Origin: Eukaryota sp. TZLM1-RC
Taxonomy: Eukaryota; Protista; Metamonada: BaSk clade
Assembly (NCBI GenBank): GCA_040285825.1
Contig: JAUPSS010000004.1
Coordinates: forward strand, 3,871,585 to 3,935,584
Direction of reading: 5' to 3'
DNA length: 64,000 bases
Positions 1,050-62,270 of the stretch are shown here, piece by piece (position 1 is the stretch's first letter; the number at the start of each line of letters is the position of its first letter). The position numbers were made by a program, and so were the translations under genes. Below the pieces are notes generated by a model that did no database searches, was not told the origin of the DNA, and saw nothing but the letters and a program-made list of their open reading frames with translations.

Positions 1050-3893
1050 ATGGTGTCATTAGTTGCTACAAAATTCAACAAATTCACCACTATCCCTCAT
1101 CAACTCACATCCATGACAGTAACTGTGAACTTCCAAGACATTCTCTGTAAAGCTGCCAAAAACCCCTTTGAACCTCTCAACATCAGTCAATATGTCTCAC
1201 CTTCGATCATGTTTTCGGATTCATCTCATAAAACCCCGTTTCTACCTTACGCTATCAAGGACATTCCTAAAAACCATCTTCTCCTGATAGAGCGTGGTTT
1301 TTCAATAGTTTGGCCCGCCAAAAAGACCCCAGAAACTACTTGCTGTTCCCTCTGCTCTCTTCGCTCGGCCTTTGAATCAGAGATCTCCCTTCTCAATCAT
1401 GTTCAGCGCAAAGCCTTATTCTCACGACTTTCAGCTCATGCCCTCCCCACTAACCCCTCTTCAGAAGATCTCCATCAATTCGTCATTGAACACTGCTTTC
1501 CTCTCACTCATTCTCAGTACCATGTCCATGCTCGTTCCCGTCACTTGTTTAGGCACTCTCCTGACGAAGGGAGGGGGATCTTTATGCTTGCTTCAAATAT
1601 CCCAGTCGCTTGTGTTCCTAATACCGCTTGTTTTACCATTGCTGATTGCTTATTTATCGTCACTACAACCAAAATTAAATCTGGTTCGTTATTGTTACTT
1701 CCTGTTGATAGCAGGCCTGGTCTGGATTGCCTATCTCTTGGTACTAGTAAGTGTGGAAAGATGTCGAGTGGAGATCAGGAAAAGCTTTATGATGTTTGTG
1801 CCAAGTGCAACTATGAAATTTCGTTATCAACAAAATCTTTATTCGAAGTTTGCTCACTCAGAGCTGGATTGTATCAATCAATCACTGACCCAAAAATTTC
1901 ATTTGATCAGACATATTCAAATTTTCAATCAGTTGCCAGTCAATTACCTCAGGGATTACCTTATTTGCAAATTGATGCCGCTCTGTGTAGATGCCTTCGA
2001 TATATTGATTTAAACTTTCCAAAAGCCGTACGATCTCTTCAATTTGCTTACCAACTATCCAAAACTAACTTGGGTTTCTACAGAAGAAGAGACTTGTTCT
2101 TGAAATTGATAAGAATGGTTGCGATCGAGTATAGTAAAAAAGATTTACCTGAAATTAGTGATAAATGGACCTCTAGGCTTCTTAAATTGACAATCTTTCC
2201 CTTTAACCTCTCAGCTTTTTTTGATCTCTATCTCACCAATTATGTTGATCTTATTGAGTTACCTTCAATTTTGTCCATATTGGAAGATGAAGATTGCGAT
2301 TCTTATGAAGACCCATTTGAAGACTCTGTCGCTATGAATAAACTAGCGGAATTAAACCAAAATTTAAAAAATTTAAAAACTCTGAAGGGTATTAAAAATA
2401 TGACCCCTGTTCCTGAGGAAACCAAAGAAACTATCAACTGTGGATCTAATCAATCAGAATTGATTACCAATCAAATTTCTGATCCAGATAGTAAGAAATC
2501 AATCTTTTCTGATTTATGCAATAGATTTAAAATTCTTTTATTTCAACGTAGATTTGTGTCGTTGCTATCAGTTTTGGGCAGAATACCATTAGATCAATCA
2601 AATCCCGTGTTAAACTTTTTTTCTGCTATTTGTTATCAAGCTTGTGGTCAGTTTGAGACAAGTATTGAAATTTTCAACGCCTTGTCGAAAATTTCAAATG
2701 AATCTCCAATGAGCTCTACTATTAACCAAGTGATTAAAGAAGCAATGTATGGAAATTTTGATTTAGCTTCAATATTTGAAGAGTATTCTACTGATCCTTA
2801 CTCTGGTTGCCTCCATTCAGAATATAGATCAAAATTGATCAAAGTCAACCAAAGTCCTCCAAATGGTCTGGGAATTTCTGCTGTCGAAGACATCAAAGTT
2901 GGAGAGTTTCTATTGGTGGAAAGAGCTCTAATCACCCAGTTTCCAAACTCTGAAGATGACGTTTCCAATCAAAATATTGATCCTTTGAGCTCTATTGCAC
3001 GAAAAATTCAACATTTAGAGGATGAAATACCTGAAAATTTAAAAATTTCTCTGTTGAGTTCTCCATGTCGAGTTGGCTGGTCAAACATAGTCAAGAAGCT
3101 CAAAAAGGAAGCTCACAAAACACCATCATTAAATACCATCAAGAAGTCATTAGAATCGAACTTGTTTCCTCTCTCCCATCGGCAATTTTGTTTTCACCCC
3201 CCTCCAAAAGAAACTAGTCTTGGTGGGTTTGGGGTGTTTTTGACCGCATCACGTTTCTCGCACACGTGTGCTCCCAACGCTGTTTACTTTACTGTAGGCG
3301 ACTTGATTTTCATTCGAGTAGTTAAACCAATCTCAAAGGGTGAGTCTGTTTCTATTAGAAGAATTGTTTCGGCTCCTAATGGGGAATTTTTCCCTTGCAG
3401 TTGCTGTGTTTGCAAAGCCGAAATTGAGTCAAACGATAACAAAGGTAACAGCTTTACATTATTGAAAAAAGTGACAAAGTTACTTTTTTCCTCCCCTTTT
3501 TCTTCTTCATTCGATGCCATATTTGATAGGTTTAGGTCAACCTTAGACTCAATGCCTTCAAGATACCCCCCACTATCAGCTGAAGCTTTTACCAGAGCTG
3601 CTCAGTTTAAGGTTTCGCAATTTGAGTTTGAGGCCGCCAGAGATTACTTGGATATTGCCTTTCAAGATTTGTTACTACCAGAATCCAGTGGAGTTGATGT
3701 TCTTCCTTTTATAGAAGTTTGTGTCTCCCTTATAGATTACTATTTGGATTGTGGTAATATTCAAGAAATTTCTGAAATGGAACGAAGAATTAAAAAATTA
3801 GTAATTTTGATTGGAATTGATGGCAATGATGATGCCCTCTGCGGAAAATTAGTTAAACAAATGAGAATTAAGAAGCAAAGTGACGTTTGGTAG
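1050..3893 (+). CDS. SMYD-like protein with two SET-like domains and helical/TPR-like segments
   Basis: 947-aa ORF. C-terminal SET: GLGISAVEDIKVGEFLLVE...GFGVFLTASRFSHTCAPNA...IRVVKPISKGESVSI with post-SET CSCCVC. Degenerate N-terminal copy: AIKDIPKNHLLLIE...GRGIFMLASNIPVACVPN...TTKIKSGSLL. Confidence 0.75.
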   Translation: MVSLVATKFNKFTTIPHQLTSMTVTVNFQDILCKAAKNPFEPLNISQYVSPSIMFSDSSHKTPFLPYAIKDIPKNHLLLIERGFSIVWPAKKTPETTCCSLCSLRSAFESEISLLNHVQRKALFSRLSAHALPTNPSSEDLHQFVIEHCFPLTHSQYHVHARSRHLFRHSPDEGRGIFMLASNIPVACVPNTACFTIADCLFIVTTTKIKSGSLLLLPVDSRPGLDCLSLGTSKCGKMSSGDQEKLYDVCAKCNYEISLSTKSLFEVCSLRAGLYQSITDPKISFDQTYSNFQSVASQLPQGLPYLQIDAALCRCLRYIDLNFPKAVRSLQFAYQLSKTNLGFYRRRDLFLKLIRMVAIEYSKKDLPEISDKWTSRLLKLTIFPFNLSAFFDLYLTNYVDLIELPSILSILEDEDCDSYEDPFEDSVAMNKLAELNQNLKNLKTLKGIKNMTPVPEETKETINCGSNQSELITNQISDPDSKKSIFSDLCNRFKILLFQRRFVSLLSVLGRIPLDQSNPVLNFFSAICYQACGQFETSIEIFNALSKISNESPMSSTINQVIKEAMYGNFDLASIFEEYSTDPYSGCLHSEYRSKLIKVNQSPPNGLGISAVEDIKVGEFLLVERALITQFPNSEDDVSNQNIDPLSSIARKIQHLEDEIPENLKISLLSSPCRVGWSNIVKKLKKEAHKTPSLNTIKKSLESNLFPLSHRQFCFHPPPKETSLGGFGVFLTASRFSHTCAPNAVYFTVGDLIFIRVVKPISKGESVSIRRIVSAPNGEFFPCSCCVCKAEIESNDNKGNSFTLLKKVTKLLFSSPFSSSFDAIFDRFRSTLDSMPSRYPPLSAEAFTRAAQFKVSQFEFEAARDYLDIAFQDLLLPESSGVDVLPFIEVCVSLIDYYLDCGNIQEISEMERRIKKLVILIGIDGNDDALCGKLVKQMRIKKQSDVW

Positions 3894-4719
3894 TGTTCAA
3901 TAAATATTTAATAATTGTTCTTTTTTCATCTTTTTTGTCTTTTCTACTGGTTATTTTCTTTTTTTTGCATTCTTTTTTAGTTTAAGTTTGGGTTTTCCAC
4001 CCTAACTATCCGGGTTTTACGAATATCTTGACAGCTTTAAGTAAGCAACATGAGCAAACATTGTTGATGTGGAGTTACAACAAGTGTACCAAGCAAGGAA
4101 TGGGTTCTTACTCTTTAAAGCAAAACATAGTTCTTTTCTTACCCAGGAAAACTATCATAAACTGTAGCAAGTTGAGTCTCACTCATTTCTTCAACTTTCT
4201 CAGGGTTCATGGCTGTAATGTAGATGTAGTATATTTGATAACTTTAAATTTAGTCACCAGGATTGAGAGTTGCAAATGGTGAAATTAGTTTGGTGTATTA
4301 ATGGTTTGGGTCAATGGAAGCAATAACATTTTCTCTTTTTAATAAATTGAGTTCATTTTCACTTAAATATAATTTACAATACTGTTTTTCTTTCTTTTTC
4401 TGTTTGCTTGTCTTGACCCTTTTTCATATAATCCCTTTGTGTTGAATCAATACCCCCATAAGGCTTAACCATAGTCCCAATGATTGAATCAAACAAATGT
4501 ACAATTGATATCTATGATCCCGAACCAACATTCATGTTCAGGATCTTTTTCCAAGTTTTAAGCTTTTTTAACGACCTCATCATCGCTTTCCATTTAACCC
4601 GTGACCAATTGAAGAAATTTGACAAATTAGACTTTTCATTCTTTCATTTTTAGTTACAATTTTGCATATTTTTTTGGCCCGTGGCTATTATAATTGGTTT
4701 TAAATTAGTCTAGTTTGAG

Positions 4720-4940
4720 TTTGAACTTCCACACTAAACAAAATAAAATCATAACTAATGGGACGAAATTCAATGAACCAAGTTTTCCCCTACAAAATCT
4801 TGATCTGCTTGCTGTCTAGCTAAAGCTCCTCTAATTGGATTGAAAAACCGAGGTAATCTCTTAATAATGGTAAATTGAATTTGAGAGCGCCATAACCAGA
4901 TATCAAATCTTTTTATTGTTTTTCCTTGAACCATTTTTTT
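4720..4940 (-). mobile_element. 3' end fragment of CRE-like non-LTR retrotransposon (family A)
   Basis: Close DNA match to 5185-5410 and to the reverse complement of 33230-33440 (e.g. tacaaaatcttgatctgcttgctgtctagctaaagc). Confidence 0.8.
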
Positions 4941-5184
4941 AGGTTACAATACAATGTGTTATTAATGGTTTAATCATTGATTTTTCTTGTTGTATTGACG
5001 AACTTCTGTTTCTCTTCATAATGCTTGAGTCAATAAAGTTCTAGTGCACAACAATAGTTTAACTTGAAGTTCATCAATTTTCTTTACATTTTGAAGAATT
5101 TGACAAGTTTTTGTTATAGAAACAATAATTGAGTTTTAGACATTGGAAATTTGATAAATGTGCCAAGAAGCCAACATAAATAAA

Positions 5185-5905
5185 ATTTATTGAATTTGCA
5201 CACTTGATTAAATTAAATCATAACTAATGGGACGACTATCATTAAACCAAGATTTCCTCTACAAAATCTTGATTTGCTTGCTGTCTAGCTAAAGCTTCTC
5301 TAATTCAATTGAAAAACCGCGGTAATCTATTAATAATGGCAAATTGAATCCGTGAACGCCATAAAAAAATATCAAATCTTTTCATTGTTTTTTCTTTCAC
5401 CATTTTTTGGAAGTCATCCAAAAAAGTTTCTGCTTCAACTGATAATCTTCCATTTATCGAAAATGGGAAAGCAATAAAAACCAGCTGTGTATTTCTATCG
5501 ACATTTGCATCTTCAATTTCTTTATCATATTTTCTATGTTTTTCTTTTGCTTTAAAATCCAGAGCAGCCACAGGATTAAGTTTTCTTCTGTGAACCAAAG
5601 TATCGTTTGCAACATTACATGAGACAAAGTCAACAATAGCTTCAGAATTTTCAATCCAATCACAGTATACATCACCTCTATCATCAGAACCAAAATTATT
5701 CAGAGAAAGTGTTTCCTTCAGCAGGGGCTCTTTGATACACGATATCCTTGCAGTTTGTGCCATATTGAAAACAGTGTCTCTAACAGCATCATGTAATGAA
5801 GAACGATAAGTTATCAATTTAGAGCAATTTAGAGCATGGCGCAAAGTGAGTTGAGGTGAATTCGAACAAATACATTTTTCTTTTGATAATAATTGGTTAA
5901 TGGGG
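5185..5905 (-). mobile_element. 5'-truncated CRE-like non-LTR retrotransposon (family A): zinc knuckle plus restriction-like endonuclease (RLE)
   Basis: ORF 5305-5844: HALNC...HDAVRD, KEP, RGDVY, VDFVS, K..KY, FPFSINGRL are RLE-type motifs; homologous to 32717-33440. Confidence 0.85.
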
Positions 5906-6689
5906 ACATAACCAATCTATATATCTATATATTGTTATAGATGAATTCATTGATTAGTACCTCAAATAATTGAAGCTTACCATTATGTTACAGCATTTCT
6001 CAAGGTTGATCAATAGACCCTGTGCTCAATATCTTTAGTACTTGTAAAGTGCCTTTTTCATACAGTTAAACGTTTATAGAATTTGCGACAAACTACATCA
6101 TCTTCTTCCCCAATAATTTAAAATATTCAACAAAGAATACAGTTTAAACAAAGTAATGATTGAAGTGAACGTATGTATCGAAAAGATTGCTAATATTCTT
6201 CTGAAACACATTTTAAAATTGTCCTTATTAACCATTAACTGAGTGGTATTATTTTCAACACTGTTTTTTAAAGCATACATCCTTTCCTAATTAATTGAAT
6301 TATGTCATCAATGTATTTTTTCTTTTGAATTTGTTGTACTTCTTTTGGCGAAATCAGAGGAAATATTTGGTCAGTTAGCTTCAAGTGAAAGAACTTCCAA
6401 CATGGAAAGGGTTCATTCTCAATTTTTTGGCCAACTGAGTCTAAAAATTCATCAGAAATTGGAACTTTGTTTGATTGAAATTAGATTTGAATGTGGTCTT
6501 GTAGGCAACTTTGTAAATGATTATATTACAGAAAAAGGTTTACCATTGATAAATCAGGATCTGGTACTCATGTAAGGAGGTAATTAGTACTTTTGTAAAT
6601 GAAGCTACTGAGGCTTTTTGACCATAATGCAGAAGCTTCAAACAGAAAAAGAAACAAAAAAATCTTTATAAACTGTACAATAATTACAA

Positions 6690-15049: not shown

Positions 15050-15290
15050 ATAATCTATTGAACTTGCACACTTAACAAAATATACTTATAACTAATGGGA
15101 CAAAATTCATTGAACCAAGATTTCCTCTACAAAATCTTGATCCGCTTGATGTCTAGCTAAAGTTTCTCTAATTCGATTGAAAAACCGAGGCAATCTATTA
15201 ATAATGGCATAATGAATTTGACAGCGTCATAAAAAGATATCAAATTTTCTCATTGTTGTTTCTTGAACTATTTTTTGGACATCATGCAAA
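15050..15290 (-). mobile_element. 3' end fragment of CRE-like family A
   Basis: Matches 5190-5430 (aactaatggga...gaaccaagatttcctctacaaaatcttgat). Confidence 0.8.
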
Positions 15291-15657
15291 AAAGTGGCTG
15301 ATTCTACTTGGTATCAATCGAATCATCACTGTATATGATGGGTTTCTGTATAAATATTTGATTTTGCTTTTTTGTAGTGAATTGAATGATTTCAGCGTTT
15401 GAACAGTGTTTAGAAAAAAAACGCTGTCTATTAAATTGAACACTGTGATTGACATTTTCAACAAATTCTTTTTGGCTGATTTGGGATAGCAAGATATAGA
15501 GTTTAAGGATTGTTGTATAGTTTATTGAATTAAATCGAATTTTACAAAAAAATATGATTGGCAAATCCAAAATGGTGACGCCTTTGTACCAAAAAATGTT
15601 AAGTTAAAGTACTTTGCCACTTTACTTTTATAGATCCCTAGTTGTAAGATCATATAC

Positions 15658-16119: not shown

Positions 16120-18069
16120 TTAATTCTGCATAAGATCCAAAAACGCTGATTTAAGCAACTTTGCCTCATCAGAAATGGTATTTCCCCCATCTTGACTCAA
16201 ACCAACAGCAGTAACTTCTCGACTTCCAAAAGCTTCAACCTTGTCCAAAAACTCTAATATTGACTCATAAACAGAGTCTTTGAGTATAATCCAATGCTTT
16301 GCCAGGGTATCAACCAACGAAGCCAAGCATCGTTTGCTGTAAAACCAAGTGTCTACTGATAATTTCTTATCCAATGGCTCAAATGACTTGATAATTCTAG
16401 ATATACCAAATTCAAAATTTCCCTTTGCACAATATAAAGTTCCAATAACTAAATTAATAATACAAGAATGGTAACATTCCTTTGTTGAATCCTGATAAAA
16501 TAAAGCTTCCTCTTCCTTCTCCACCCTCTTCATCAAATCTTCAGCATCTTCATTATTGCTAGTCATGATGTAAGAAACACAAAGATTCGCTAAAACAATT
16601 GCTTGGACACTCAACAGCCCAGTATCATAGTACTGTTCAACAATTGGTTGATATCCTTGAACACAATCATGGAATCGTTCATTCATGAACTGACAATGAG
16701 TTTGATTCAACTTCCAAGTGGTATTATCTGCACAAAATTCTGCACTTTGTTTCAATAGTTTTTCACAAGCAGAATAATTGTCATCATCCCAAAGTATTTT
16801 AGCTTGCATCATTAGAACTGGAATGTAACTTTCCAATTCCGCGTCAAACGAGTCAAGCAAAGTCTTAATTTTGACCTGATCACGTGACAGTTTTGCGTCT
16901 TGAATCATTTTAGTAATCTTTCTGAGCCTATCAACGTGACGACCTGACAGCGCATCAAGTTTCCTAAATGCATCCTGGGGAGAACTTTTGCTGGTTATCG
17001 CAGCATCAATGAAATCTGAAAAATTCTGTGAGACCAATCTTGATACCAACATTGAATTTTCTGAAAGAATATCTGCAGCAATGCTCTCCAACCCATGCTG
17101 TAATTGCAACACGAGCAAGTTTGACATTGTTTCTGGAGGGAAAGGAGGTGTTTCCAATAAGAAAGAAAGCTTCTTAATGGCAGCATTGGGATCTTCCACA
17201 GTGTCCAACAAAGCTGAATTGTGTAGGGTTATGGGATCAAGTTCTTCCTCGTTCCTTGGTGGCATATCATTTAAAGCAATTTTGGCTTCATCAAATTCTT
17301 CCTTTTCAAAGTGAATGGCAATTTTAAGATTGAAGGCCTCAATTAAGGAAGTTTCGTGGAGAATCATTGAATTCCCAACAGATCTTACATCACCATCATT
17401 CCCTGCACCTACAGAAAGTTCTGGGTGAACCCTTATGCCGTGTTCTTTAATCTCTTCTGCTAACCTTAATGCCTGGTCATGCTGCCCTAGGCGATGGTGA
17501 CAAAGCGCTATTCTGTAGACAAGATCAGGGGAAGAACCAAATTGAGTGAGCGCCTTGGCATAAGAATCTAGAGATTCTTGGAACTTTCCTTCTTTGAATA
17601 AGAGAGCTCCATTTGAAATGAAAAAATCCTTTGAAGTTGAGTTTAATTCTGACGATTCATTAATATACTGACGAACGGCAGCATAATCTTCCTCTTCAAA
17701 CTTAATGGAAACTAATAGTTGAAGTGCCTTTTCATAGACAGTTGGGTTAGTGTCTGGAACCTGGAGGGCTTCCTTGGCAGCTTCAACCAAGAATCCTGCC
17801 TTGAACAAAGCTTGGGCATGATAGAGTTGGTACGAAGGATCTTTTGGGCATAATGAGTGAAGTTGTTGGTAAATAGAAGCAGAAGATTCAAAGTTTTGCA
17901 TCATATAGTGACAGTAGGCTAACAGGGAGAGAGCAGCCCTACTTTCAGGGAATCGTTGAAGTTGGTACTCAAGAAGAGGGAGAAGATCTGAATAACGTTG
18001 CTCTTGTATAAGTGAATAGACATGTGATGTGAGTTCGCCTTCTACTTGGAGGTTTGGAGCAGCGGCCAT
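16120..18069 (-). CDS. IFT70: Intraflagellar transport protein IFT70/TTC30 (fleer/DYF-1), TPR protein
   Basis: 649 aa; SRAALSLLAYCHY, HPELSVG...DVRSVGNS, EAFNLKIAI, DMPPRNEEELDPITLHN, PPFPPET, VLANLCVSYIMTSNNEDAEDLM, HSCIINLVIGTLYCAKGNFEFGISRIIKS. Confidence 0.96.
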   Translation of the reverse strand: MAAAPNLQVEGELTSHVYSLIQEQRYSDLLPLLEYQLQRFPESRAALSLLAYCHYMMQNFESSASIYQQLHSLCPKDPSYQLYHAQALFKAGFLVEAAKEALQVPDTNPTVYEKALQLLVSIKFEEEDYAAVRQYINESSELNSTSKDFFISNGALLFKEGKFQESLDSYAKALTQFGSSPDLVYRIALCHHRLGQHDQALRLAEEIKEHGIRVHPELSVGAGNDGDVRSVGNSMILHETSLIEAFNLKIAIHFEKEEFDEAKIALNDMPPRNEEELDPITLHNSALLDTVEDPNAAIKKLSFLLETPPFPPETMSNLLVLQLQHGLESIAADILSENSMLVSRLVSQNFSDFIDAAITSKSSPQDAFRKLDALSGRHVDRLRKITKMIQDAKLSRDQVKIKTLLDSFDAELESYIPVLMMQAKILWDDDNYSACEKLLKQSAEFCADNTTWKLNQTHCQFMNERFHDCVQGYQPIVEQYYDTGLLSVQAIVLANLCVSYIMTSNNEDAEDLMKRVEKEEEALFYQDSTKECYHSCIINLVIGTLYCAKGNFEFGISRIIKSFEPLDKKLSVDTWFYSKRCLASLVDTLAKHWIILKDSVYESILEFLDKVEAFGSREVTAVGLSQDGGNTISDEAKLLKSAFLDLMQN

Positions 18070-18129
18070 TCTCTCAAGTGGAAATAAAAAACTTGAAATA
18101 AACGTCTATGGTTTTTATTTAAAATGAAT

Positions 18130-18250
18130 ATTTTCTTCAAGCATCAAACTTATTCCAAGAACTTTCATTCTTGGTGAGATCGTCCACAGACGTTCCAGAA
18201 TCCACGATTAATTGGCATTTCTCCTCTAGAACAATCAGTTGCTTTGAAGC
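18130..18250 (-). ncRNA. Candidate Fanzor omegaRNA scaffold
   Basis: Lies immediately 3' of the Fanzor stop. On the minus strand: CCAAGAAU-GAAA-GUUCUUGG 8-bp stem with GNRA loop (18174-18155), AUCGU/ACGAU stem (18208-18179), and an enclosing CUUCAA/UUGAAG stem (18249-18244 with 18140-18135). Confidence 0.5.
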
Positions 18251-18921
18251 TAGTTTATTTGTGGTCTCTGGAACGCTTCTGGTCTTGTTCCATAGTAGTG
18301 CTCACGAATTGCAATTTCTAGCTGATTCAGTGATGCAGAAATGTCTCTAGACCAAACTTGATTACATTCCGGACAATTGAAATATGCGTTGTGAACTTTA
18401 ACTTCCTCATCAACTTCTCGATAGATCTTTTGGTGTAACATCTTGCAGTAGTTCACCTTTGCAGGTGTCATATATTCATCTCCGATCTTCACATTAGCAA
18501 ATGAACATTGTAACAACTTGAGAAACGCCTTACGTGGAGTTTTCACTTTTTGACGTGATGTACCACCACCTCCATTGCCAAACCACACCTTTACTTCTCG
18601 GCCGTCTGCAAATTTTTTCACTTTGTTGATAATTGAGCTGAATCTTTTCTGTTTTCTTATAAAGACGTCAAATGTGTTTCTCCTCAATGCTTTTCGAGCA
18701 CTCAGATCTAATTGCTGCTTCAGCAATGATCGTCTTACGTTATTACCTTCACAGTCCTTATAGTCACCGATAGTTGATATTTCAAGCAGATAATGGTTCA
18801 ATTTCTGCACGTCATAAACATCTATTGATGAATGGGTCAGTGAAGCGGAGTGATTGATTTTTCGTTGCTTTGGTGCCAAGAAGATATTGGATACGGTCGG
18901 TCCTGAACCTGTTCAGATGCT
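18250..18921 (-). pseudogene. Fanzor (TnpB-like RNA-guided nuclease) C-terminal half: RuvC-II, zinc finger, RuvC-III
   Basis: RRNTFDVFIRKQK, VWFGNG..TP, IGDEYMT, CPECNQVWSRDISASLN, terminal RPEAFQR match the Fanzor C-terminal consensus. Confidence 0.85.
18910..18921. repeat. 12-bp target-site duplication TGTTCAGATGCT (partner at 20908-20919)
   Basis: Identical 12-mers flank the 1986-bp retroelement. Confidence 0.92.
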
Positions 18922-20907
18922 TTTATTGAAAATTAAGAAGAAACTACTCGAATACTAAAAAAACTACCTACCAACATTGACGATCTTCTCTTTTCTTTTG
19001 AAGTATATAATTAAAAGCACTGTGGCATTTAAAACTATTCTTCAAAATGATACAGCTAATTTCATTTGCTACCTCATTCCATCCAAATTGGTCAAACAGT
19101 ATTTTTGCTTTAGTGTAAAAACCCCCATGAACACTAAAAACGAGAGGAACAATTTGGTTAATTTAATTTAATTCTTTTAAAATTGAATACTTTGCAATCT
19201 TATCGGAATAAGCTTTCGAAAAAGCATCAGTCCAATTATTACCATAACCTCCAACTATGGTGACATCAAAAGCAATTTGGTTGACGTTTGAAAGCCATCA
19301 ACACGTAACTGCTTATTTAAACCAAATTTAAATTCCTTTTCAGATTCAAAATTATTTAATTCGTTAATAAAATTATTTACTTCGTCATGTCTTTGTGTAA
19401 CCATTCTTGAGACTTTTCTACATTGAAACGAGTGATCTAAGCCTAAGGTTTCCATAACCACACAAAGGACATATCACAAATTGTTCTCCTTGAAGCAATC
19501 TCAGATTTATTAGGTATTTGAAGCAATCATCTGAGAACGTGAAATTTTGAGAAATAGGCAAGACTTTCAAAAAACAAGATGATTGACTGTCACAATTTGA
19601 AATAAATTGTACTAGTTCACATTCTGATATTTTTTCCTTTAAAAGACTCAATTTTTCCTTATAAAATAAGTGAGTGATTTGACGTTGGCAAATTTTAATT
19701 CGTTTGTCCCAGATTGAGTCAAAACCAGCAAAAGAAGGTGATAAAGCTGATAGTCAAACCCTATACTGATCACGTGGAATTAAATTTGTTAAATCAAGAT
19801 CACGTACATCCAAGTATACAGAAACTGAATAGCAAATATGTGCAACTTGGCCCAAATGGAGAAACCCTAATCCACCCAAAGAATGAAAGAATAAATTAAA
19901 TCAAAATTATTTGATTCTTCCAATCCCATTAAGTTGAAATAAGCAACAAATTCTGAAACCCAAAGGTGAAAACCCATGCTGGTGGACTCATAGGGAACTG
20001 TTCGGGCCCAGTACATCAAAATTGAATTAATACAATGTCTAAATATTAAAAATTGATTTTGTAGTGGTAATGATTTTAATAAAAACAAACTGGGAATCAA
20101 TTCATTTTGAACTTCTTGAATTATAAAAGAGGATTCAAACTCAGTAGAACCTATTGGAGATCCCAAACACATGAAATCATCTTCAACTGAAAACACTTCG
20201 GTTTTTGTCAAATTTAATTTCAAACCAATTTGCTTGAAAATTAATTCTAATTCATTTAATAACAACTCAATGCTGACTTCTTTTTGACAAAGAATATAAG
20301 TATCATCTAAATAACTTTTAACTTCAACACCTGGATAATTATTTAAAAATGATAATACGTGAATAGTTCCAAGTGCATATAAAAAAGGTGAAATTGGATC
20401 ACCTTGCTTGACACCAGTGTTTGATGGAATAACCTGATCATAAAAAATTAAATTTGATTGTTTCCCATATGGCCATTTAAAAAAATTAACTAAATTGGGA
20501 GACTGATCACACAACAACTTATATAAATGATTTCGACTTAAAGTGTTAAAAGCATTTGAAATATCTAAGCAAATTACTTTGTGAAAACATTTTGCAACTC
20601 TCTTTAGTCTTAGTTCATGAATAATTTTTTCACTGCCTCTTTCAACTTTGACACCATATTGACCTTCATTTGTCAAAAATGAAGAATCAACAAAATTAAG
20701 TAAATACTTAGATGCCATTCTGTAAAAAATTTCGGAAATAGCGATTGGTCTAACGCCATTATTTGGTTTTGTTAAACCTATCAATTTGGATGATAACAAA
20801 ACAACTGAAAGAGATTTATCCAAAGTTCCATTGATCATATGATCTACCAAATACATTAGAATATCTGCTAATTCATCGTTAATAATTGAAGGAAAATGAA
20901 CCATGCA
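18922..20907 (-). mobile_element. 5'-truncated CRE-like non-LTR retrotransposon (RT-ZnK-RLE) inserted in the Fanzor gene
   Basis: RT motifs GVRPIAISEIFYR, QYGV, LDISNAFN, GVKQGDPISP, SYLDD; CPLC..HSFQC, RHDEV, RVDG; 3' end ...TTCAATAAA abutting the TSD; frameshifts downstream of RT. Confidence 0.9.
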
Positions 20908-22084
20908 TGTTCAGATGCTGGAACCACATAAATTTGAGTGGTTGGGGTCGATGTCCCAGAATACCGTTTCCGTTTCATCATCAGGTATCTGCCACTCAAT
21001 AGCTTTTGCTTTCTGGCGAGGTTTTGGCCGTTCAACGTTGGCTTGTAGGGTTTGTTTTCTATTCCGAGTGGTTTCGTAGTAATCAAGTTCCCCTTTGGGT
21101 CTCTTATCAGCCAAGGCTTCTCCAGACAATCTCACTCGTGTTCCTTTTGGGTGGGGTTTGAAAGTTTTACGGACACTGTCACCATTAAAAGACATGTTGT
21201 AGTCATTAGATTTTGTTTTAAAAATATAAATAAGGGTTTTTCAAAATTGTCTGTGATGTGTTTTTGGACATAAAGTGGTTGAGAACCCATGTGGAACAGG
21301 GAAGAAAAACAGGCTTCAAATTAGCAATGGGAGTGAGTCTATGTCGTTTAAAGGTATGTGGAAAGGCTTGCTCCAGGTGGTTTTGGATTGTTAATCCGCA
21401 ACGAAAGATGTAGGTACTGTTCTCTTGATTGAGGGTCACTCTTCAGGAAGAAAGAAGAGTCTTATGTTGTACCTTTGTGGATCACCAACCAAAAAGTTAA
21501 ATAGAGTGCCAGCCATTGTATGGTGTTTGTTGAACCAAGTAAGAAGAGGTTCCCTAAAGTACGTGTTGTTGTGAAGTACAAAGCCAGCATAAGTGACTGG
21601 TGCAGGGCATTTATGTCCAATTCTATATGAGCGAAAAAGTTAACCTTTCAAGACACAAGACCATCAGCAAGAAACTGCTGGTACTTGCCTTGCAGCTGGC
21701 GGCATTTTGCATCCACTAGTTGTTGTAGAGGCCTACTAGTGGGTAGCGCATGATTACAACCTTTTCTTGACATGAAAAAGACAGCAAACGACCATGATGT
21801 AGAGATTCGCTCGAGCTCTTCATAAACATGACCTTTGCCACGAATGTTGAATGGATGTCTAACTTTTGGCTCAGAGACCGCCACAAAATCAAAACACCGC
21901 ATCCTGTATTGAAGCTGAGTCACAAAATGATTGGGTTCACACGGAAGTGTACAGCAAAAACTCTCGCCAGCAAACTGCCCAGATGAACCATGGTGGTCAC
22001 CTTGGTCAGCTGTCCATCAATTTAATCACACACTGGCTGCTCAAAGAACTGATGAAGGGAACAGGCACGTGTCCATGATTGCAT
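20908..22084 (-). pseudogene. Fanzor N-terminal half through RuvC-I (stops and frameshifts)
   Basis: ATG at 22084: MQSWTRACSLHQFF..IDGQLTKVTTMVHLGSLLA; then RHRLTPIANLKPVFLP, SFNGDSVRKTF and VFWDIDPNHSNL (RuvC-I-like). Removing the insertion and one TSD joins it in frame to the 18250-18909 half. Confidence 0.75.
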
Positions 22085-22999
22085 AACCTTACTGAAAACG
22101 GAAGGTGCAGAGACAATAAGAAATGATTGATTTCTGAGTTTCAATTACTTTTAAAATTTGGTTCATTTTCAACTTATTACACCCACAAAACAATAAAACA
22201 TGGACAAAGTGATATATAGACACCAATTATAATAGATACTAGATGTGCTTTAAGCATTGTCTTTCCTAATAATAGTAAACTGATGTAAAGTTTGATGAAA
22301 TTGTTCTTAGTCACCGTAGTTGTTCGTTCAATTAAGGGTGTTTGTAAATTTAATAAATTCGTAAAATTTCACAATTTAATTATTTTATTCAGTACAAACA
22401 TGTTACCAAGGGAAGTCAGAACATCCGTTTATTCCTCCCCATTTCGTTCCCTTTTTGATGGAGAACCTTTCGCTTGTGATTTTGGTAAAATTGCTGACTT
22501 TTCTTTTATAGAGAATATAGGTTTCGTTCAGTGGGCTTACACATTGACCATAAAACCTTTATCTCGGATTCCATAAAATAAACTAGCGACAGATAACTAA
22601 CAAAAGACAGTCTGTAGAGGTACTATCGGCTACTCTTGAGTCTAAACTCGAGTCTATTGCTGATGGTCCATCCCAAACTGCGCCACCCTCTTCAACAGCA
22701 ACCCAAGCTCGTCCTCCTTTACGCTCCCCCACCTCTACCCCCACGTGATCTTCCTGAGTTTTAGATGAATCTCCTTAATAGTTCTCCTTCATCATCTGTG
22801 AAATTTGTCACACTACCTGATAGAGTAAAGTATGTCAAGCTGTTGAAATCAGTCTGAATAAAGTACAATATCAAACTTGATCACGATTGTAGTGTATTTG
22901 GTGTTGAGAGTAATGTTTTTGAATACGCAACTCTTGAAATATATGTAGATAATGGAAGGTTTACTGAGTGACTGTCAAACTTTTCTTAGGTATTATTAA

Positions 23000-34116: not shown

Positions 34117-34810
34117 TTACATAATACAACAGCCTTTCTTATCTTCATTATTTTGTTCATTACTGGAACTCACGGAATGATTTACAATCTGAGCAGGAAC
34201 AACCTTCTGTGATTAGAAATCAATTAAAAAAACATACAGATGCAGCCTCAACATCATGTTTGGAAAGAGGAACATGGGCTAAATCAGCAGCAATTCTATG
34301 AAACACGGCATTGACATTGTCACCGGTCTTCGCTGATAGGAAAAAAGAAGACATGTCGTTCTCCCTAGCAAAGTCGTTGTGTTTATCAGGTTTCACCATA
34401 CGAAGATGTGCAAGATCCGTCTTTGTACCAAGTAGAATCAGGTGAGGTAATGACTCATCTTGATATGTTCTTCTCACAATGTTTAGCCAATCATGAAGAT
34501 TATGGAAGCTTTGAAGATTGGTAATGTCATATACAAGTATTATGGCATGAGAACCGTATATGTATTTAGAGAGCATCTTGGAGCCTATGGTCTGGCCTCC
34601 AATATCCCATAGTTGAAGTGTCACACGTGTATCATTAGGAAAGTCTATATTTCGGCTAAAGAAGTCCAAACCGACTGTTTGCTTGTAAGACTTAGCAAAG
34701 TAATCATCAACAAAGCGGTACACAGTTGAAGTTTTTCCAACTGCACCATCACCAAGAAGTATGACTTTAAACCTTAATAATTCACTTTCAGAGTCTGAAG
34801 AACTGTACAT
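34117..34810 (-). CDS. RAB28: Rab28 small GTPase, two exons (34810-34238 and 34206-34117)
   Basis: GDGAVGKT, YKQTVGLDFF, WDIGGQTIGSKML.KYIYG are Rab28-type motifs. Splicing out 31 nt restores KVVPAQIVNH...KKGCCIM* with a CaaX end. Confidence 0.93.
34207..34237 (-). other. 31-nt spliceosomal intron
   Basis: GTATGTTTTTTTAATTGATTTCTAATCACAG: GTATGT donor, CTAAT branch point directly joined to CACAG acceptor; contains an in-frame stop. Confidence 0.9.
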
Positions 34811-35564
34811 TGATCAAAGTTGAGTGGTAATTCAATTAATGCATGTTTCTTTCCAAACATCATTGTTTTTGTTTGATGAACGCTATTATACTCCAAACTT
34901 CCTGCATGTACTCACAGATCATTGCAGTACCTTTGTTCTAGTATTATCATGAATATGTAAGCGTGGTATCACGTACTTATTGAGTGTACTGCTTACTTCC
35001 CTATTCCAATAAACTCCACATTCACTATTTTGCCAGTGCAGCATACCTTAACATTGGACTGGTTAAATATCATCTTTGTTCTGATTGCAATTTTGCATGA
35101 GTTCTTGAATTATATTTTCTAGATTGTTAATAACATGAGCATTATAGTACTGCTTTTTGCCGACCGTAAATCATCTTCCATTCTCCTTTTTGTGCGTTTG
35201 AACCTTTTTTATGCAAATGGATCTTTTACTTTTTCGATTGTTTTCGACACAAGCAAATCAACTTTTACTGGTACGATAACCTTCTACCGAACAGGCTTTA
35301 ATACCATTTTTTGCGAAAATTCTTTTCAGTCCTACACATCTCATGGTGCTTGCTTGATCTTGGAAATTGCTCTTCGCAAAGTCAATTACAATACTTATAT
35401 CATCATCCAATTTGACAATTGTTGCCTTAAGTATTGGGGGAAAAGAAAAGTGGATTTATTTTCTAATCATATTATATAAGCCCTTGGGCGCAAACACTGC
35501 TTCTTCCCTATTTTAAAATAAATCATTTCATATGAATATGAAACAAAAACTACAAACAAAAAAC

Positions 35565-52160: not shown

Positions 52161-55100
52161 CATTTTGGGAAAATTAATATAACAATTGTGGTGTTAAAGT
52201 CCGTCCTATAATCATTTGAGTAGTCATTGGTATGATTGGTTGAATGGTCATTGGTATGATTAGGTGATTTGCATGTAGTCCTTATGTACTAGATGTGATC
52301 AACTTGTGATCAAACTTTGTGTGAAATTGTGTGTGAGTAATGTTGGGTATGTGTTACTTGATCAGTACAAACTCATGATTACATTTTCAATTGATTTTGT
52401 ATATATTTGAATCAATTGAGTTTATTAATTTTTAAACATTATAATATTGCATTTTTAAATTGTAAAAATAGTAAAAAATAAAAAAGTATACAATTGAATG
52501 TTGCAAACTAATAAAACCATTGCTGTAAGTGTAAGAGTATCGTTTTTGATACGATTTACTGAGGCTCATATGAAGTTCCTAGTTTCGTATATTGACCAAT
52601 GGTTGTTTATTACAATCATTGGTCAAATCTTTAAAGTCCATTTTGGGACAATTAATATAACAATTGTGGTGTTAAAGTCCGTGCTATGGTCATTTGAGTA
52701 GTCATTGGTATGATTAGGTGAGTTGCATGTAGTCCTTATCTACTAGATGTGATCAACTTGTGATCAAACTTTGTGTGAAATTGTGTGTTAGTAATGTTGG
52801 CTATGTGTTACTTGATCAGTACAAACTCATGATTACATTTTCAAATGATTTTGTATATATTTGAATTAATTGAGTGTATTAATTTTTAAACATTAAATTG
52901 TAAAAAAAAGTAAAAAATCAAAAAGTATACAATTGAATGTTGTAAACTAATAAAACAATTGCTGTAAGTGTAAGAGTATCGTTTTTGATACGATTTACTG
53001 AGGCTCATATGAAGTTCCTAGTTTCGTATATTGACCAATGGTTGTTTATTACAATCATTGGTCAAATCTTTAAAGTCCATTTTGGGACAATTAATATAAC
53101 AATTGTGGTGTTAAAGTCCGTGCTATGGTCATTTGAGTAGTCATTGGTATGATTGGTTGAATGGTCATTGGTATGATTAGGTGAGTTGCATGTAGTCCTT
53201 ATCTACTAGATGTGATCAACTTGTGATCAAACTTTGTGTGAAATTGTGTGTGAGTAATGTTGGCTATGTGTTACTTGATCAGTACAAACTCATGATTACA
53301 TTTTCAAATGATTTTGTATATATTTGAATTAATTGAGTGTATTAATTTTTAAACATTAAATTGTAAAAAAAGTAAAAAATCAAAAAGTATACAATTGAAT
53401 GTTGTAAACTAATAAAACAATTGCTGTAAGTGTAAGAGTATCGTTTTTGATACGATTTACTGAGGCTCATATGAAGTTCCTAGTTTCGTATATTGACCAA
53501 TGGTTGTTTATTACAATCATTGGTCAAATCTTTAAAGTCCATTTTGGGACAATTAATATAACAATTGTGGTGTTAAAGTCCTTGCTATGGTCATTTGAGT
53601 AGTCATTGGTTTGATTTGGTGAGTTGCATGTAGTCCTTATGTACTAGATGTGATCAAACTTTGTGTGAAATTGTGTGTGAGTAATGTTGGCTATGTGTTA
53701 CTTGATCAGTACAAACTCATGATTACATTTTCAAATGATTTTGTATATATTTGAATTAATTGAGTGTATTAATTTTTAAACATTAAATTGTAAAAAAAGT
53801 AAAAAATCAAAAAGTATACAATTGAATGTTGTAAACTAATAAAACAATTGCTGTAAGTGTAAGAGTATCGTTTTTGATACGATTTACTGAGGCTCATATG
53901 AAGTTCCTAGTTTCGTATATTGACCAATGGTTGTTTATTACAATCATTGGTCAAATCTTTAAAGTCCATTTTGGGACAATTAATATAACAATTGTGGTGT
54001 TAAAGTCCTTGCTATGGTCATTTGAGTAGTCATTGGTGTGATTTGGTGAGTTGCATGTAGTCTTTATGTACTAGATGTGATCAAACTTTGTGTGAAATTG
54101 TGTGTGAGTAATGTTGGCTATGTGTTACTTGATCAGTACAAACTCATGATTACATTTTCAAATGATTTTGTATATATTTGAATTAATTGAGTGTATTAAT
54201 TTTTAAACATTAAATTGTAAAAAAAGTAAAAAATCAAAAAGTATACAATTGAATGTTGTAAACTAATAAAACAATTGCTGTAAGTGTAAGAGTATCGTTT
54301 TTGATACGATTTACTGAGGCTCATATGAAGTTCCTAGTTTTCGTATATTGACCAATGGTTGTTTATTACAATCATTGGTCAAATCTTTAAAGTCCATTTT
54401 GGGACAATTAATATAACAATTGTGGTGTTAAAGTCCTTGCTATGGTCATTTGAGTAGTCATTGGTTTGATTTGGTGAGTTGCATGTAGTCCTTATGTACT
54501 AGATGTGATCAAACTTTGTGTGAAATTGTGTGTGAGTAATGTTGGCTATGTGTTACTTGATCAGTACAAACTCATGATTACATTTTCAAATGATTTTGTA
54601 TATATTTGAATTAATTGAGTGTATTAATTTTTAAACATTAAATTGTAAAAAAGTAAAAATCAAAAAGTATACAATTGAATGTTGTAAACTAATAAAACAA
54701 TTGCTGTAAGTGTAAGAGTATCGTTTTGATACGATTTACTGAGGCTCATATGAAGTTCCTAGTTTCGTATATTGACCAATGGTTGTTTATTACAATCATT
54801 GGTCAAATCTTTAAAGTCCATTTTGGGACAATTAATATAACAATTGTGGTGTTAAAGTCCTTGCTATGGTCATTTGAGTAGTCATTGGTTTGATTTGGTG
54901 AGTTGCATGTAGTCCTTATGTACTAGATGTGATCAACTTGTGATCAAACTTTGTGTGAAATTGTGTGTGAGTAATGTTGGCTATGTGTTACTTGATCAGT
55001 ACAAACTCATGATTACATTTTCAAATGATTTTGTATATATTTGAATTAATTGAGTGTATTAATTTTTAAACATTAAATTGTAAAAAAAGTAAAAAATCAA

Positions 55101-58100
55101 AAAGTATACAATTGAATGTTGTAAACTAATAAAACAATTGCTGTAAGTGTAAGAGTATCGTTTTTGATACGATTTACTGAGGCTCATATGAAGTTCCTAG
55201 TTTCGTATATTGACCAATGGTTGTTTATTACAATCATTGGTCAAATCTTTAAAGTCCATTTTGGGACAATTAATATAACAATTGTGGTGTTAAAGTCCTT
55301 GCTATGGTCATTTGAGTAGTCATTGGTTTGATTTGGTGAGTTGCATGTAGTCCTTATGTACTAGATGTGATCAACTTGTGATCAAACTTTGTGTGAAATT
55401 GTGTGTAGTAATGTTGGCTATGTGTTACTTGATCAGTACAAACTCATGATTACATTTTCAAATGATTTTGTATATATTTGAATTAATTGAGTGTATTAAT
55501 TTTTAAACATTAAATTGTAAAAAAAGTAAAAAATCAAAAAGTATACAATTGAATGTTGTAAACTAATAAAACAATTGCTGTAAGTGTAAGAGTATCGTTT
55601 TTGATACGATTTACTGAGGCTCATATGAAGTTCCTAGTTTCGTATATTGACCAATGGTTGTTTATTACAATCATTGGTCAAATCTTTAAAGTCCATTTTG
55701 GGACAATTAATATAACAATTGTGGTGTTAAAGTCCTTGCTATGGTCATTTGAGTAGTCATTGGTTTGATTTGGTGAGTTGCATGTAGTCCTTATGTACTA
55801 GATGTGATCAACTTGTGATCAAACTTTGTGTGAAATTGTGTGTGAGTAATGTTGGCTATGTGTTACTTGATCAGTACAAACTCATGATTACATTTTCAAA
55901 TGATTTTGTATATATTTGAATTAATTGAGTGTATTAATTTTTAAACATTAAATTGTAAAAAAGTAAAAATCAAAAGTATACAATTGAATGTTGTAAACTA
56001 ATAAAACAATTGCTGTAAGTGTAAGAGTATCGTTTTTGATACGATTTACTGAGGCTCATATGAAGTTCCTAGTTTCGTATATTGACCAATGGTTGTTTAT
56101 TACAATCATTGGTCAAATCTTTAAAGTCCATTTTGGGACAATTAATATAACAATTGTGGTGTTAAAGTCCTTGCTATGGTCATTTGAGTAGTCATTGGTT
56201 TGATTTGGTGAGTTGCATGTAGTCCTTATGTACTAGATGTGATCAACTTGTGATCAAACTTTGTGTGAAATTGTGTGTGAGTAATGTTGGCTATGTGTTA
56301 CTTGATCAGTACAAACTCATGATTACATTTTCAAATGATTTTGTATATATTTGAATTAATTGAGTGTATTAATTTTTAAACATTAAATTGTAAAAAAAGT
56401 AAAAAATCAAAAAGTATACAATTGAATGTTGTAAACTAATAAAACAATTGCTGTAAGTGTAAGAGTATCGTTTTTGATACGATTTACTGAGGCTCATATG
56501 AAGTTCCTAGTTTCGTATATTGACCAATGGTTGTTTATTACAATCATTGGTCAAATCTTTAAAGTCCATTTTGGGACAATTAATATAACAATTGTGGTGT
56601 TAAAGTCCTTGCTATGGTCATTTGAGTAGTCATTGGTATGATTGGTTGAATGGTCATTGGTATGATTAGGTGAGTTGCATGTAGTCCTTATGTACTAGAT
56701 GTGATCAACTTGTGATCAAACTTTGTGTGAAATTGTGTGTGAGTAATGTTGGCTATGTGTTACTTGATCAGTACAAACTCATGATTACATTTTCAAATGA
56801 TTTTGTATATATTTGAATTAATTGAGTGTATTAATTTTTAAACATTAAATTGTAAAAAAGTAAAAAATCAAAAGTATACAATTGAATGTTGTAAACTAAT
56901 AAAACAATTGCTGTAAGTGTAAGAGTATCGTTTTTGATACGATTTACTGAGGCTCATATGAAGTTCCTAGTTTCGTATATTGACCAATGGTTGTTTATTA
57001 CAATCATTGGTCAAATCTTTAAAGTCCATTTTGGGACAATTAATATAACAATTGTGGTGTTAAAGTCCTTGCTATGGTCATTTGAGTAGTCATTGGTTTG
57101 ATTTGGTGAGTTGCATGTAGTCCTTATGTACTAGATGTGATCAACTTGTGATCAAACTTTGTGTGAAATTGTGTGTGAGTAATGTTGGCTATGTGTTACT
57201 TGATCAGTACAAACTCATGATTACATTTTCAAATGATTTTGTATATATTTGAATTAATTGAGTGTATTAATTTTTAAACATTAAATTGTAAAAAAGTAAA
57301 AAATCAAAAGTATACAATTGAATGTTGTAAACTAATAAAACAATTGCTGTAAGTGTAAGAGTATCGTTTTTGATACGATTTACTGAGGCTCATATGAAGT
57401 TCCTAGTTTTCGTATATTGACCAATGGTTGTTTATTACAATCATTGGTCAAATCTTTAAAGTCCATTTTGGGACAATTAATATAACAATTGTGGTGTTAA
57501 AGTCCTTGCTATGGTCATTTGAGTAGTCATTGGTTTGATTTGGTGAGTTGCATGTAGTCCTTATGTACTAGATGTGATCAACTTGTGATCAAACTTTGTG
57601 TGAAATTGTGTGTGAGTAATGTTGGCTATGTGTTACTTGATCAGTACAAACTCATGATTACATTTTCAAATGATTTTGTATATATTTGAATTAATTGAGT
57701 GTATTAATTTTTAAACATTAAATTGTAAAAAAAGTAAAAAATCAAAAAGTATACAATTGAATGTTGTAAACTAATAAAACAATTGCTGTAAGTGTAAGAG
57801 TATCGTTTTTGATACGATTTACTGAGGCTCATATGAAGTTCCTAGTTTCGTATATTGACCAATGGTTGTTTATTACAATCATTGGTCAAATCTTTAAAGT
57901 CCATTTTGGGACAATTAATATAACAATTGTGGTGTTAAAGTCCTTGCTATGGTCATTTGAGTAGTCATTGGTTTGATTTGGTGAGTTGCATGTAGTCCTT
58001 ATGTACTAGATGTGATCAACTTGTGATCAAACTTTGTGTGAAATTGTGTGTGAGTAATGTTGGCTATGTGTTACTTGATCAGTACAAACTCATGATTACA

Positions 58101-61100: not shown

Positions 61101-62270
61101 TATGATTGGTTGAATGGTCATTGGTGTGATGAGGTGAGTTGCATGTAGTCTTTATGTACTAGATGTGATCAACTTGTGATCAAACTTTGTGTGAAATTGT
61201 GTGTGAGTAATGTTGGCTATGTGTTACTTGATCAGTACAAACTCATGATTACATTTTCAAATGATTTTGTATATATTTGAATTAATTGAGTGTATTAATT
61301 TTTAAACATTAAATTGTAAAAAAAGTAAAAATCAAAAGTATACAATTGAATGTTGTAAACTAATAAAACAATTGCTGTAAGTGTAAGAGTATCGTTTTTG
61401 ATACGATTTACTGAGGCTCATATGAAGTTCCTAGTTTCGTATATTGACCAATGGTTGTTTATTACAATCATTGGTCAAATCTTTAAAGTCCATTTTGGGA
61501 CAATTAATATAACAATTGTGGTGTTAAAGTCCGTGCTATGGTCATTTGAGTAGTCATTGGTATGATTGGTTGAATGGTCATTGGTGTGATTAGGTGAGTT
61601 GCATGTAGTCTTTATGTACTAGATGTGATCAACTTGTGATCAAACTTTGTGTGAAATTGTGTGTGAGTAATGTTGGCTATGTGTTACTTGATCAGTACAA
61701 ACTCATGATTACATTTTCAAATGATTTTGTATATATTTGAATTAATTGAGTGTATTAATTTTTAAACATTAAATTGTAAAAAAAGTAAAAAATCAAAAAG
61801 TATACAATTGAATGTTGTAAACTAATAAAACAATTGCTGTAAGTGTAAGAGTATCGTTTTTGATACGATTTACTGAGGCTCATATGAAGTTCCTAGTTTC
61901 GTATATTGACCAATGGTTGTTTATTACAATCATTGGTCAAATCTTTAAAGTCCATTTTGGGACAATTAATATAACAATTGTGGTGTTAAAGTCCGTGCTA
62001 TGGTCATTTGAGTAGTCATTGGTTTGATTGGTTGAATGGTCATTGGTGTGATTAGATGAGTTGCATGTAGTCTTTATGTACTAGATGTGATCAACTTGTG
62101 ATCAAACTTTGTGTGAAATTGTGTGAGTAATGTTGGCTATGTGTACTTGATCAGTACAAACTCATGATTACATTTTCAAATGATTTTGTATATATTTGAA
62201 TTAATTGAGTGTATTAATTTTTAAACATTAAATTGTAAAAAAAGTAAAAAATCAAAAAGTATACAATTGA
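52161..62270. repeat. Tandem array of ~23 units of ~425-475 bp (mode ~438 bp)
   Basis: Anchor gtccattttgggacaattaatataacaattgtggtg recurs about every 440 bp; units near-identical apart from a ~23-nt and an 11-nt internal duplication and homopolymer lengths. Confidence 0.98.

Follow-up and report, generated by a model that had tools for sequence, protein, structure and literature searches.

The 64,000-nt DNA stretch analyzed here (the window), part of the 6.9-Mb contig JAUPSS010000004.1 of Skoliomonas litria TZLM1-RC (assembly GCA_040285825.1), contains the relic of a gene for Fanzor, an RNA-guided nuclease, without annotation in the record. S. litria is a free-living flagellate of soda lakes that belongs to the metamonads (PMC11603281). 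The minus-strand segment from 18118 to 22233 is very probably a decayed Fanzor1 element with one open reading frame (ORF) that was later split by a non-long-terminal-repeat (non-LTR) retrotransposon, and both elements are inert. Without the insert, the gene runs from an ATG at 22084–22082 to a TAG at 18252–18250 and comprises 1,837 bp or 612 codons, in agreement with the original prediction of a gene of ~610 codons starting near 22084. Full-length relatives cover the spliced sequence from 22090 to 18259 in tblastn searches, and the relatives P0001, P0004, P0005 and P0019 align with it in consecutive blocks (22084–21944, 21935–21633, 21609–21484, 21436–21221 and 21204 onward). Once full-length relatives are aligned, the 73-aa frame at 21221–21439 can no longer be taken for the beginning of a compact protein of TnpB size.

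The split of the gene is defined by a 12-bp target-site duplication (TSD). The sequence TGTTCAGATGCT is present exactly twice on the plus strand of the window, at 18910–18921 and 20908–20919, and both copies read AGC ATC TGA ACA on the minus strand. Deletion of the insert together with one copy joins ...VFWDIDPNHSNLCGSSI*TGSGPTVSNIFLAPK... in register. At L001, a paralogous locus of the same contig that lies 1.5 Mb away and was found via protein P0019, the site is uninterrupted: the 12-mer occurs once (AGTATTGGAACA), and GGA takes the place of the window's TGA. In blastn, window positions 22233 to 20906 correspond to L001 5862–7221 (77% identity), and positions 18914 to 18118 correspond to L001 7215–8015 (87.5%). 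The retroelement insertion and its TSD, both of which had been predicted from the window alone, are real. Because both TSD copies carry the TGA, the nonsense mutation is older than the insertion, in agreement with the earlier view that the gene was probably already disrupted when the retroelement landed. TGA is a regular stop codon in this host; a reading as a sense codon is ruled out, as three of the seven long host ORFs of the window terminate in TGA.

The insert displays the features of a non-LTR retrotransposon: it has a reverse transcriptase (RT) ORF, is truncated at its 5' end and is flanked by an exact TSD of 12 bp, and the corresponding site in the paralog is empty. Its minus-strand ORF at 19867–20904 matches Pfam RVT_1 (E 1.2e-19). 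The start of the RT ORF coincides with the junction, which shows the retroelement to be 5'-truncated; the frames downstream of the RT ORF are broken. On the 3' side of the RT (19255–19651, minus strand), a C-x2-C-x8-H-x4-C pattern followed by RHD can be read by eye across one frameshift, and this stretch looks like the CCHC/restriction-like endonuclease (RLE) module of R2/CRE-type non-LTR elements. Neither the window nor the fetched loci yielded a further copy of the retroelement.

Sequence, profile and predicted-fold evidence identify the family of the split gene as Fanzor1. The C-terminal 220-codon piece was used in a phmmer search of 1.84 billion representative proteins and matched full-length proteins of 548, 592, 604 and 539 aa with E values from 1.4e-62 (P0001) to 5.9e-28. 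The split gene is far beyond chance, because its C-terminal piece alone matches full-length relatives at this level. These relatives are all named "hypothetical protein", come from Skoliomonas (assemblies TZLM1-RC, TZLM3-RCL and GEM-RC1) and share the motifs AIDPNHSNLCG, GDE(F/Y)xTS and (S/H)RDISA(S/A) and an RPxxF(R/Q)R tail. The relic therewith falls into a family of Skoliomonas-specific proteins of 540–605 aa. Typical Fanzor1-like proteins are reached by the same piece at E 4e-8 to 1e-3 (P0015, 4.4e-8), and P0004 and P0008 match the TNB domain (Pfam PF07282) at 28.1 and 30.7 bits, above the cut-off of 26.3 bits. By phmmer, the piece has no match in the PDB. The Skoliomonas-only profile (A2) reaches no PDB Fanzor, and thus the Fanzor1 link depends on intermediates, profile–profile comparison and predicted folds. 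In hhalign, this profile aligns with 12 distant relatives (A3) at 99.7% probability (E 1.5e-25, 550 columns), and the distant relatives in turn match full-length SpuFz1 (E 1.7e-69), PpFz (6.8e-60) and GtFz1 (2.2e-53).

Fold comparison was performed on AlphaFold models of the relatives P0001 and P0005 (predicted local distance difference test scores of 71.5 and 75.4, respectively), not of the relic. The top seven Foldseek matches of the P0005 model in the PDB are all Fanzor1 proteins (E 1e-12 to 4e-8), with template-modeling scores of 0.54–0.55 to SpuFz. In VIA-align, the same model matches Fanzor1 structures with Z values of 19.3–21.4 over 453–509 residues, followed by Cas12j (12.8), TnpB (8h1j; 11.7) and Fanzor2 (9b0l; 11.0). 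The P0001 model ranks the structures identically. The Fanzor1 assignment of the original prediction is upheld by these results.

The motifs on which that assignment was built (DIDPN, GDEYMT, SRDISAS, CPEC and RPxxFxR) are all present in the relic, whose C-terminal tail reads RPEAFQRP. The D/E/D columns of the RuvC active site are invariant in every alignment (A1, A2 and A5), and all three residues are kept in the relic. DIDPN had been regarded as a divergent RuvC-I motif, a view that does not hold: SpuFz1 reads IDPNK at the aligned position, and its residues D383 and N385, together with E541 and D606, coordinate the two catalytic magnesium ions (PMC10432273). A genuine peculiarity of the clade, as read from the sequences, concerns the zinc finger instead: its first half has the form C-x3-H (YCKMLH in the relic) in place of CxxC, giving a C-H-C-C ligand set in the relic as in the whole Skoliomonas family.

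The window copy has accumulated three premature stops and four frameshifts besides the retroelement, in line with the "few stops and frameshifts" noted earlier. The third stop is the TGA inside the TSD, where L001 has GGA. L001 is free of at least six of the eight lesions of the window copy and has its own set, consisting of two deletions and one insertion of 1 base each, an insertion of 51 bp and a 6-bp deletion that removes DP of IDPN; its C-terminal half contains stops and shifts. The lesions are mostly private to each copy, and therefore the window copy and L001 decayed independently after separate insertions. The two copies differ at ~8% of aligned bases in their 3' halves and at ~17% in their 5' halves. 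The 3'-half differences are distributed over the three codon positions as 22/12/21, and the substitutions include 17 synonymous and 26 non-synonymous changes, with synonymous changes somewhat over-represented. The codon-position spread fits a divergence that selection partly constrained at first and that later became neutral. Given its three stops, four frameshifts and 2-kb insertion, the window copy has no ORF able to give an active nuclease; to judge from these lesions, it is a member of Fanzor1 by descent only and a dead fossil.

A conserved non-coding tail of 74–131 nt follows the stop codon in every subfamily of the Skoliomonas elements. The predicted RNA fold of the 3' tail in the window is better than those of shuffled controls (z = -3.2), and the tail of an intact relative gives z = -2.2 against shuffles. 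Between the window and L001, the long predicted stem is broken at three of 11 pairs in L001 with no compensatory changes, a comparison that carries no information because both copies are dead. A search with the window and four loci at the Rfam gathering threshold gave no match. By analogy with known systems, the protein was presumably guided by an omegaRNA from the 3' end of the element.

Some observations weigh against the decayed-Fanzor1 interpretation. The PF07282 match of the relic itself stays under the cut-off (17.1 bits, E 0.006), and the HMMER search of the PDB with the Skoliomonas-only profile reached no Fanzor. The C-terminal 220 codons are still open. In a long-read assembly, frameshifts could in principle be errors, but the three stops and the retroelement could not. 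The open C-terminal frame raises the possibility that the locus is still functional, with its 209–220-codon ORF (18250–18912) expressed as a truncated RuvC protein or with the 3' region acting in trans as a "ghost" omegaRNA donor. The frame retains the glutamate, the aspartate and the zinc ligands, the 3' region gives a better fold than shuffled sequences, the differences from L001 show some excess of synonymous changes, and ghost elements in which the omegaRNA is kept but the protein is missing have been described for S. punctatus (PMC10432273). However, the piece lacks RuvC-I, WED and REC and so can neither form an active site nor bind a guide, the C-terminal half of L001 is riddled with stops, the long 3' stem is broken there without compensation, and S. 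litria yielded no close and intact partner protein. Residual function of the locus is therefore considered quite improbable. Even less credence is given to a gene that is intact in the organism, with frameshifts produced by long-read assembly and the retroelement as the only real lesion. Four of the eight lesions are 1- to 2-base indels, the typical error class, and the P0001 locus, itself near-intact, likewise shows one 1-base shift, but the three in-frame stops are base substitutions relative to the paralog (TAA for TAT, TGA for TGG and TGA for GGA), and the retroelement, with TGA in both TSD copies, alone separates RuvC-I from RuvC-II. Placement in another branch of the TnpB family (prokaryotic TnpB by transfer or contamination, Fanzor2 or viral TnpB) has hardly any likelihood. 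In its favor, the only TnpB/Cas12-superfamily matches of the Skoliomonas-only profile in the PDB are weak ones to the C-terminal zinc-finger region of LaTranC (E ~0.3). Against it, the locus lies between host genes on a large eukaryotic contig, the 540–605-aa proteins are homologous to Fanzor1 over their full length including the N-terminal region, and the Z values of Fanzor2 and TnpB (11.0–11.7) fall short of the 19–21 of Fanzor1.

Table 1. Coordinates of the Fanzor1 relic, its lesions, the inserted retroelement and the adjacent host gene in the window
Feature	Position	Strand	Remarks
Fanzor element, minimal extent including the later retroelement	18118..22233	-	Homology with paralog L001; ~2.1 kb without insert
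N-terminal half of Fanzor1 pseudogene (WED/REC up to RuvC-I)	20920..22084	-	Four successive frames
C-terminal 220 codons of Fanzor1 pseudogene, still open	18250..18912	-	RuvC linker helices, RuvC-II, zinc finger/TNB, RuvC-III, RPxxFxR tail
RuvC-I catalytic Asp codon (second D of W-D-I-D-P-N-H)	20947..20949	-	Invariant column; aligns with SpuFz1 IDPN
RuvC-II catalytic Glu codon (G-D-E-Y-M-T)	18475..18477	-	Invariant column
RuvC-III catalytic Asp codon (S-R-D-I-S-A-S)	18343..18345	-	Invariant column
CPEC, second half of zinc finger	18364..18375	-	Read from sequence
Non-coding 3' region, candidate site of former omegaRNA scaffold	18075..18249	-	Only 18118-18249 common with paralog
Premature stop TAA (CD*ID)	22022..22024	-	L001 has TAT (Tyr)
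Frameshift, 2 extra bases versus in-frame L001	21936..21945 (about 21940)	-	tblastn and paralog comparison
Premature stop TGA	21648..21650	-	Trp TGG kept in L001, P0001 and P0005 (W of xWK(R/L)NFF)
Frameshift, 1 base missing versus L001	21610..21637 (about 21636)	-	tblastn and paralog comparison
Frameshift, placed only to interval	21436..21484	-	tblastn
Frameshift, 1 extra base versus L001 (single frame there)	21204..21226 (about 21224)	-	tblastn and paralog comparison
Target-site duplication, copy at retroelement 5' junction	20908..20919	.	Holds TGA 20913-20911; empty site in L001
Non-LTR retrotransposon, 5'-truncated, decayed	18922..20907 (1,986 bp)	-	Same orientation as Fanzor gene; 3' end ...CAATAAA
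Target-site duplication, copy at retroelement 3' junction	18910..18921	.	Holds TGA 18915-18913
Presumed IFT70/TTC30-like TPR host gene	16120..18069	-	Intact; same orientation as Fanzor element, directly downstream of its right end

The history of the locus can be outlined on the basis of the decayed-Fanzor1 interpretation. The active element encoded a ~610-aa nuclease with a split RuvC domain of the TnpB/Cas12 type. By analogy with SpuFz1, the protein would have bound an omegaRNA transcribed across the ORF's end and the 3' tail, with the guide coming from the flank, and the complex would have cleaved matching DNA next to a transposon-adjacent motif. The element inserted just upstream of the IFT70-like gene in the same direction and subsequently gathered disabling mutations, including the change of GGA to TGA. 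An unrelated non-LTR retrotransposon later landed on the TGA codon by target-primed reverse transcription, was 5'-truncated on arrival and duplicated 12 bp with the TGA in both copies, and the two elements are now inert.

The suggestion that intact copies may exist elsewhere in the genome holds only in part. In S. litria, no intact copy of the relic's subfamily was seen, and the sole close paralog found, L001, is also dead. Upstream of the paralog, the first ~600 bp of the paralogous element stand in three tandem copies (L001:4404–4999, 5136–5656 and 5862–6470). The window also holds, at 34919–35400 on the minus strand, a second Fanzor-like tail that is much more decayed (VEGYRTSK ... CGVYWNREVSSTLN); it ends ~110 nt upstream of a co-oriented Rab28-like gene (34220–34810) and gives weak tblastn matches to the C-terminal piece of the window (E 0.07) and to P0004 (E 0.002). 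Another S. litria subfamily, of the P0001 type, is represented by at least four of the fetched copies (L002 in direct and inverted orientation, L011 and L012), which are 96–99% identical. The best of them lies at the P0001 locus, where one 1-base shift near L002:4763 divides two long open frames; the GenBank model of P0001 covers this shift with an intron. Two P0001-type copies are arranged head to head in L002 (151–1728, minus strand, and 3601–5982, plus strand) with identical left flanks, and therefore a larger unit was duplicated in inverted orientation.

Intact elements in multiple copies are found in the sister strain TZLM3-RCL. Three subfamilies are present in this strain, with 90%-identity clusters of 10, 14 and 41 gene models. 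Many full-length ORFs of 592, 604/605 and 596 aa translate without interruption, and every subfamily has intact copies. In copy-to-copy comparisons, the whole element of the P0004 type measures 2,613 bp with copies 97–98% identical, and that of the P0005 type measures ~2,480 bp with copies 98.3% identical. The identity of 97–98% within a subfamily, as checked for the P0004 and P0005 types, indicates that the elements were recently active. Neither of these two types contains a second ORF, and no terminal inverted repeats (TIRs) were found in the intact TZLM3-RCL elements. The right ends are located 106 nt (P0004 type) and 74 nt (P0005 type) past the stop codon and share the terminal motif (T)TTTGAAA-NN-CACAG. 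Clear TSDs are observed at L005 (ATGCCTA, 7 bp; 2266–2272 and 4886–4892), at L012 of S. litria in the flanks of 1418–3834 (TGGATGGGT, 9 bp) and at L007 (CTTATTTGACT, 11 bp), the last with 10 extra bases at the left junction.

The non-coding 5' leaders of two TZLM3-RCL subfamilies share a 354-nt module with 89% identity (L004:2581–2935 and L007:2511–2864), although the proteins of these subfamilies are only ~35–38% identical. The module has a conserved 15-bp stem around a 71-nt GC-rich loop, contains no ORF, has no Rfam match and is missing from those S. litria elements that were examined.

The window element lies directly upstream of a co-oriented gene that we take, from the opening residues of its protein and from Pfam TPR hits, to be IFT70/TTC30-like. 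The protein is encoded exactly on the contig of the relic. The right end of the element is 49 nt from the ATG of this gene by paralog homology. Based on motif resemblance, the element ends may extend up to ~22253 and ~18075; the latter, ~6 nt before the IFT70 ATG, would apply if the right-end-like sequence TTTTTTATTTCCAC is part of the element. In 10 of the 11 fetched loci, the first annotated gene downstream points in the same direction as the element. At four loci of TZLM3-RCL, the right end is located 0, 4, 44 and 48 nt from an annotated ATG. Two of the three clear TSDs of intact or near-intact elements contain ATG, which in L005 is the annotated start codon of RtcB. From these few loci, it is conceivable, although we lean against it, that a TIR-less single-ORF Fanzor1 family inserts directly before start codons in the orientation of the gene and that the relic is one footprint of this behavior. 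If so, the right end of the element would sit at the promoter or 5' untranslated region of a gene, and the omegaRNA guide would consist of the first codons of that gene.

No convincing TSD was found for the Fanzor element of the window. The pair AGACAATGC and AGAGAATGG, which match at seven of nine positions, is not claimed as such because it depends on boundaries of our own choice. The motif ATTNCCACT was likewise rejected. Each of the window's two relics is followed by an ATG that has this motif 8 or 13 nt in front of it; the motif occurs three times against 2.9 expected, and the argument would be circular, as the motif was derived from the same two sites.

Two further repeats were observed in the window. 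A 253-bp stretch downstream of the IFT70-like gene (15056–15308) recurs with 84% identity near the paralogous Fanzor locus (L001:11863–12115) and is probably another dispersed repeat. A satellite occupies 52455–62270 and consists of 22 copies of a 437-bp unit (96% matching) with ~29% GC and a GC skew of ~+0.3.

The window copy is a fossil without practical value and adds little by itself. The Fanzor literature searched makes no mention of metamonads, and the Skoliomonas Fanzor1 clade appears to be undescribed. The Skoliomonas elements are compact, carry a single gene without inverted repeats or a transposase, leave TSDs and in most cases abut the starts of host genes. They could help to address the open question of how "solo" Fanzor elements move and what role the nuclease plays for them. 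The clade also enlarges the genome-editing pool by natural Fanzor1 sequences that are divergent and have a C-H-C-C zinc finger.

Among known systems, the retroelement resembles RLE non-LTR retrotransposons (R2/CRE/NeSL type) in its RT domain, 5' truncation and 12-bp TSD and, by eye, in the CCHC and RHD motifs, but it is decayed and lacks a poly(A) tail. For the Fanzor1 family, prokaryotic TnpB of IS200/IS605 (ISDra2; PDB 8H1J and 8EXA) has the same RuvC D/E/D core and zinc-finger/TNB domain (PF07282). TnpB differs in that it is a protein of ~400 aa, is paired with the TnpA transposase and produces no TSD, and the N-terminal REC/WED region of the Skoliomonas proteins matches Fanzor1, not TnpB. 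Assignment to prokaryotic TnpB, whether of IS200/IS605 or IS607, was rejected in view of the eukaryotic host, the lack of a second ORF and the TSDs of 7, 9 and 11 bp in the relatives. Fanzor2 is a compact TnpB-like protein of ~400–500 aa that is closest to IS607 TnpB. ApmFz2 (PDB 9B0L) is, like the Skoliomonas proteins, a TnpB homologue borne by eukaryotes or viruses with the same catalytic core, but its profile match is confined to the C-terminal ~55 residues in the zinc-finger region (E 5e-7). Together with the size of the Skoliomonas proteins and the low fold score of ApmFz2, this led to the rejection of Fanzor2.

PpFz from Parasitella parasitica and GtFz1 from Guillardia theta give full-length fold matches (Z 20.7–21.4) and profile matches via intermediates. 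GtFz1 loci also lack inverted repeats and an associated transposase (PMC10432273). Both proteins are larger than those of Skoliomonas, contain extra insertions and are 10–13% identical to them. SpuFz1 from Spizellomyces punctatus (PDB 8GKH and 9CEU–9CEZ) ranks equally with PpFz and GtFz among the solved structures that come closest (Foldseek E 1e-12). The RuvC-I IDPN motif is identical in SpuFz1, and Spu-1 likewise comprises single-ORF elements of ~2.1–2.6 kb without an internal transposase that are present in many copies, including decayed ones (PMC10432273). SpuFz1 is only 13–14% identical to the Skoliomonas family, in which the first half of the zinc finger differs as described above. Spu-1 carries 30-nt inverted repeats, in contrast to the Skoliomonas elements, whose copies show TSDs of 7–11 bp, the window copy being dead. 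TSDs of up to 12 nt are known for Fanzor1-bearing transposons (PMC10711439).

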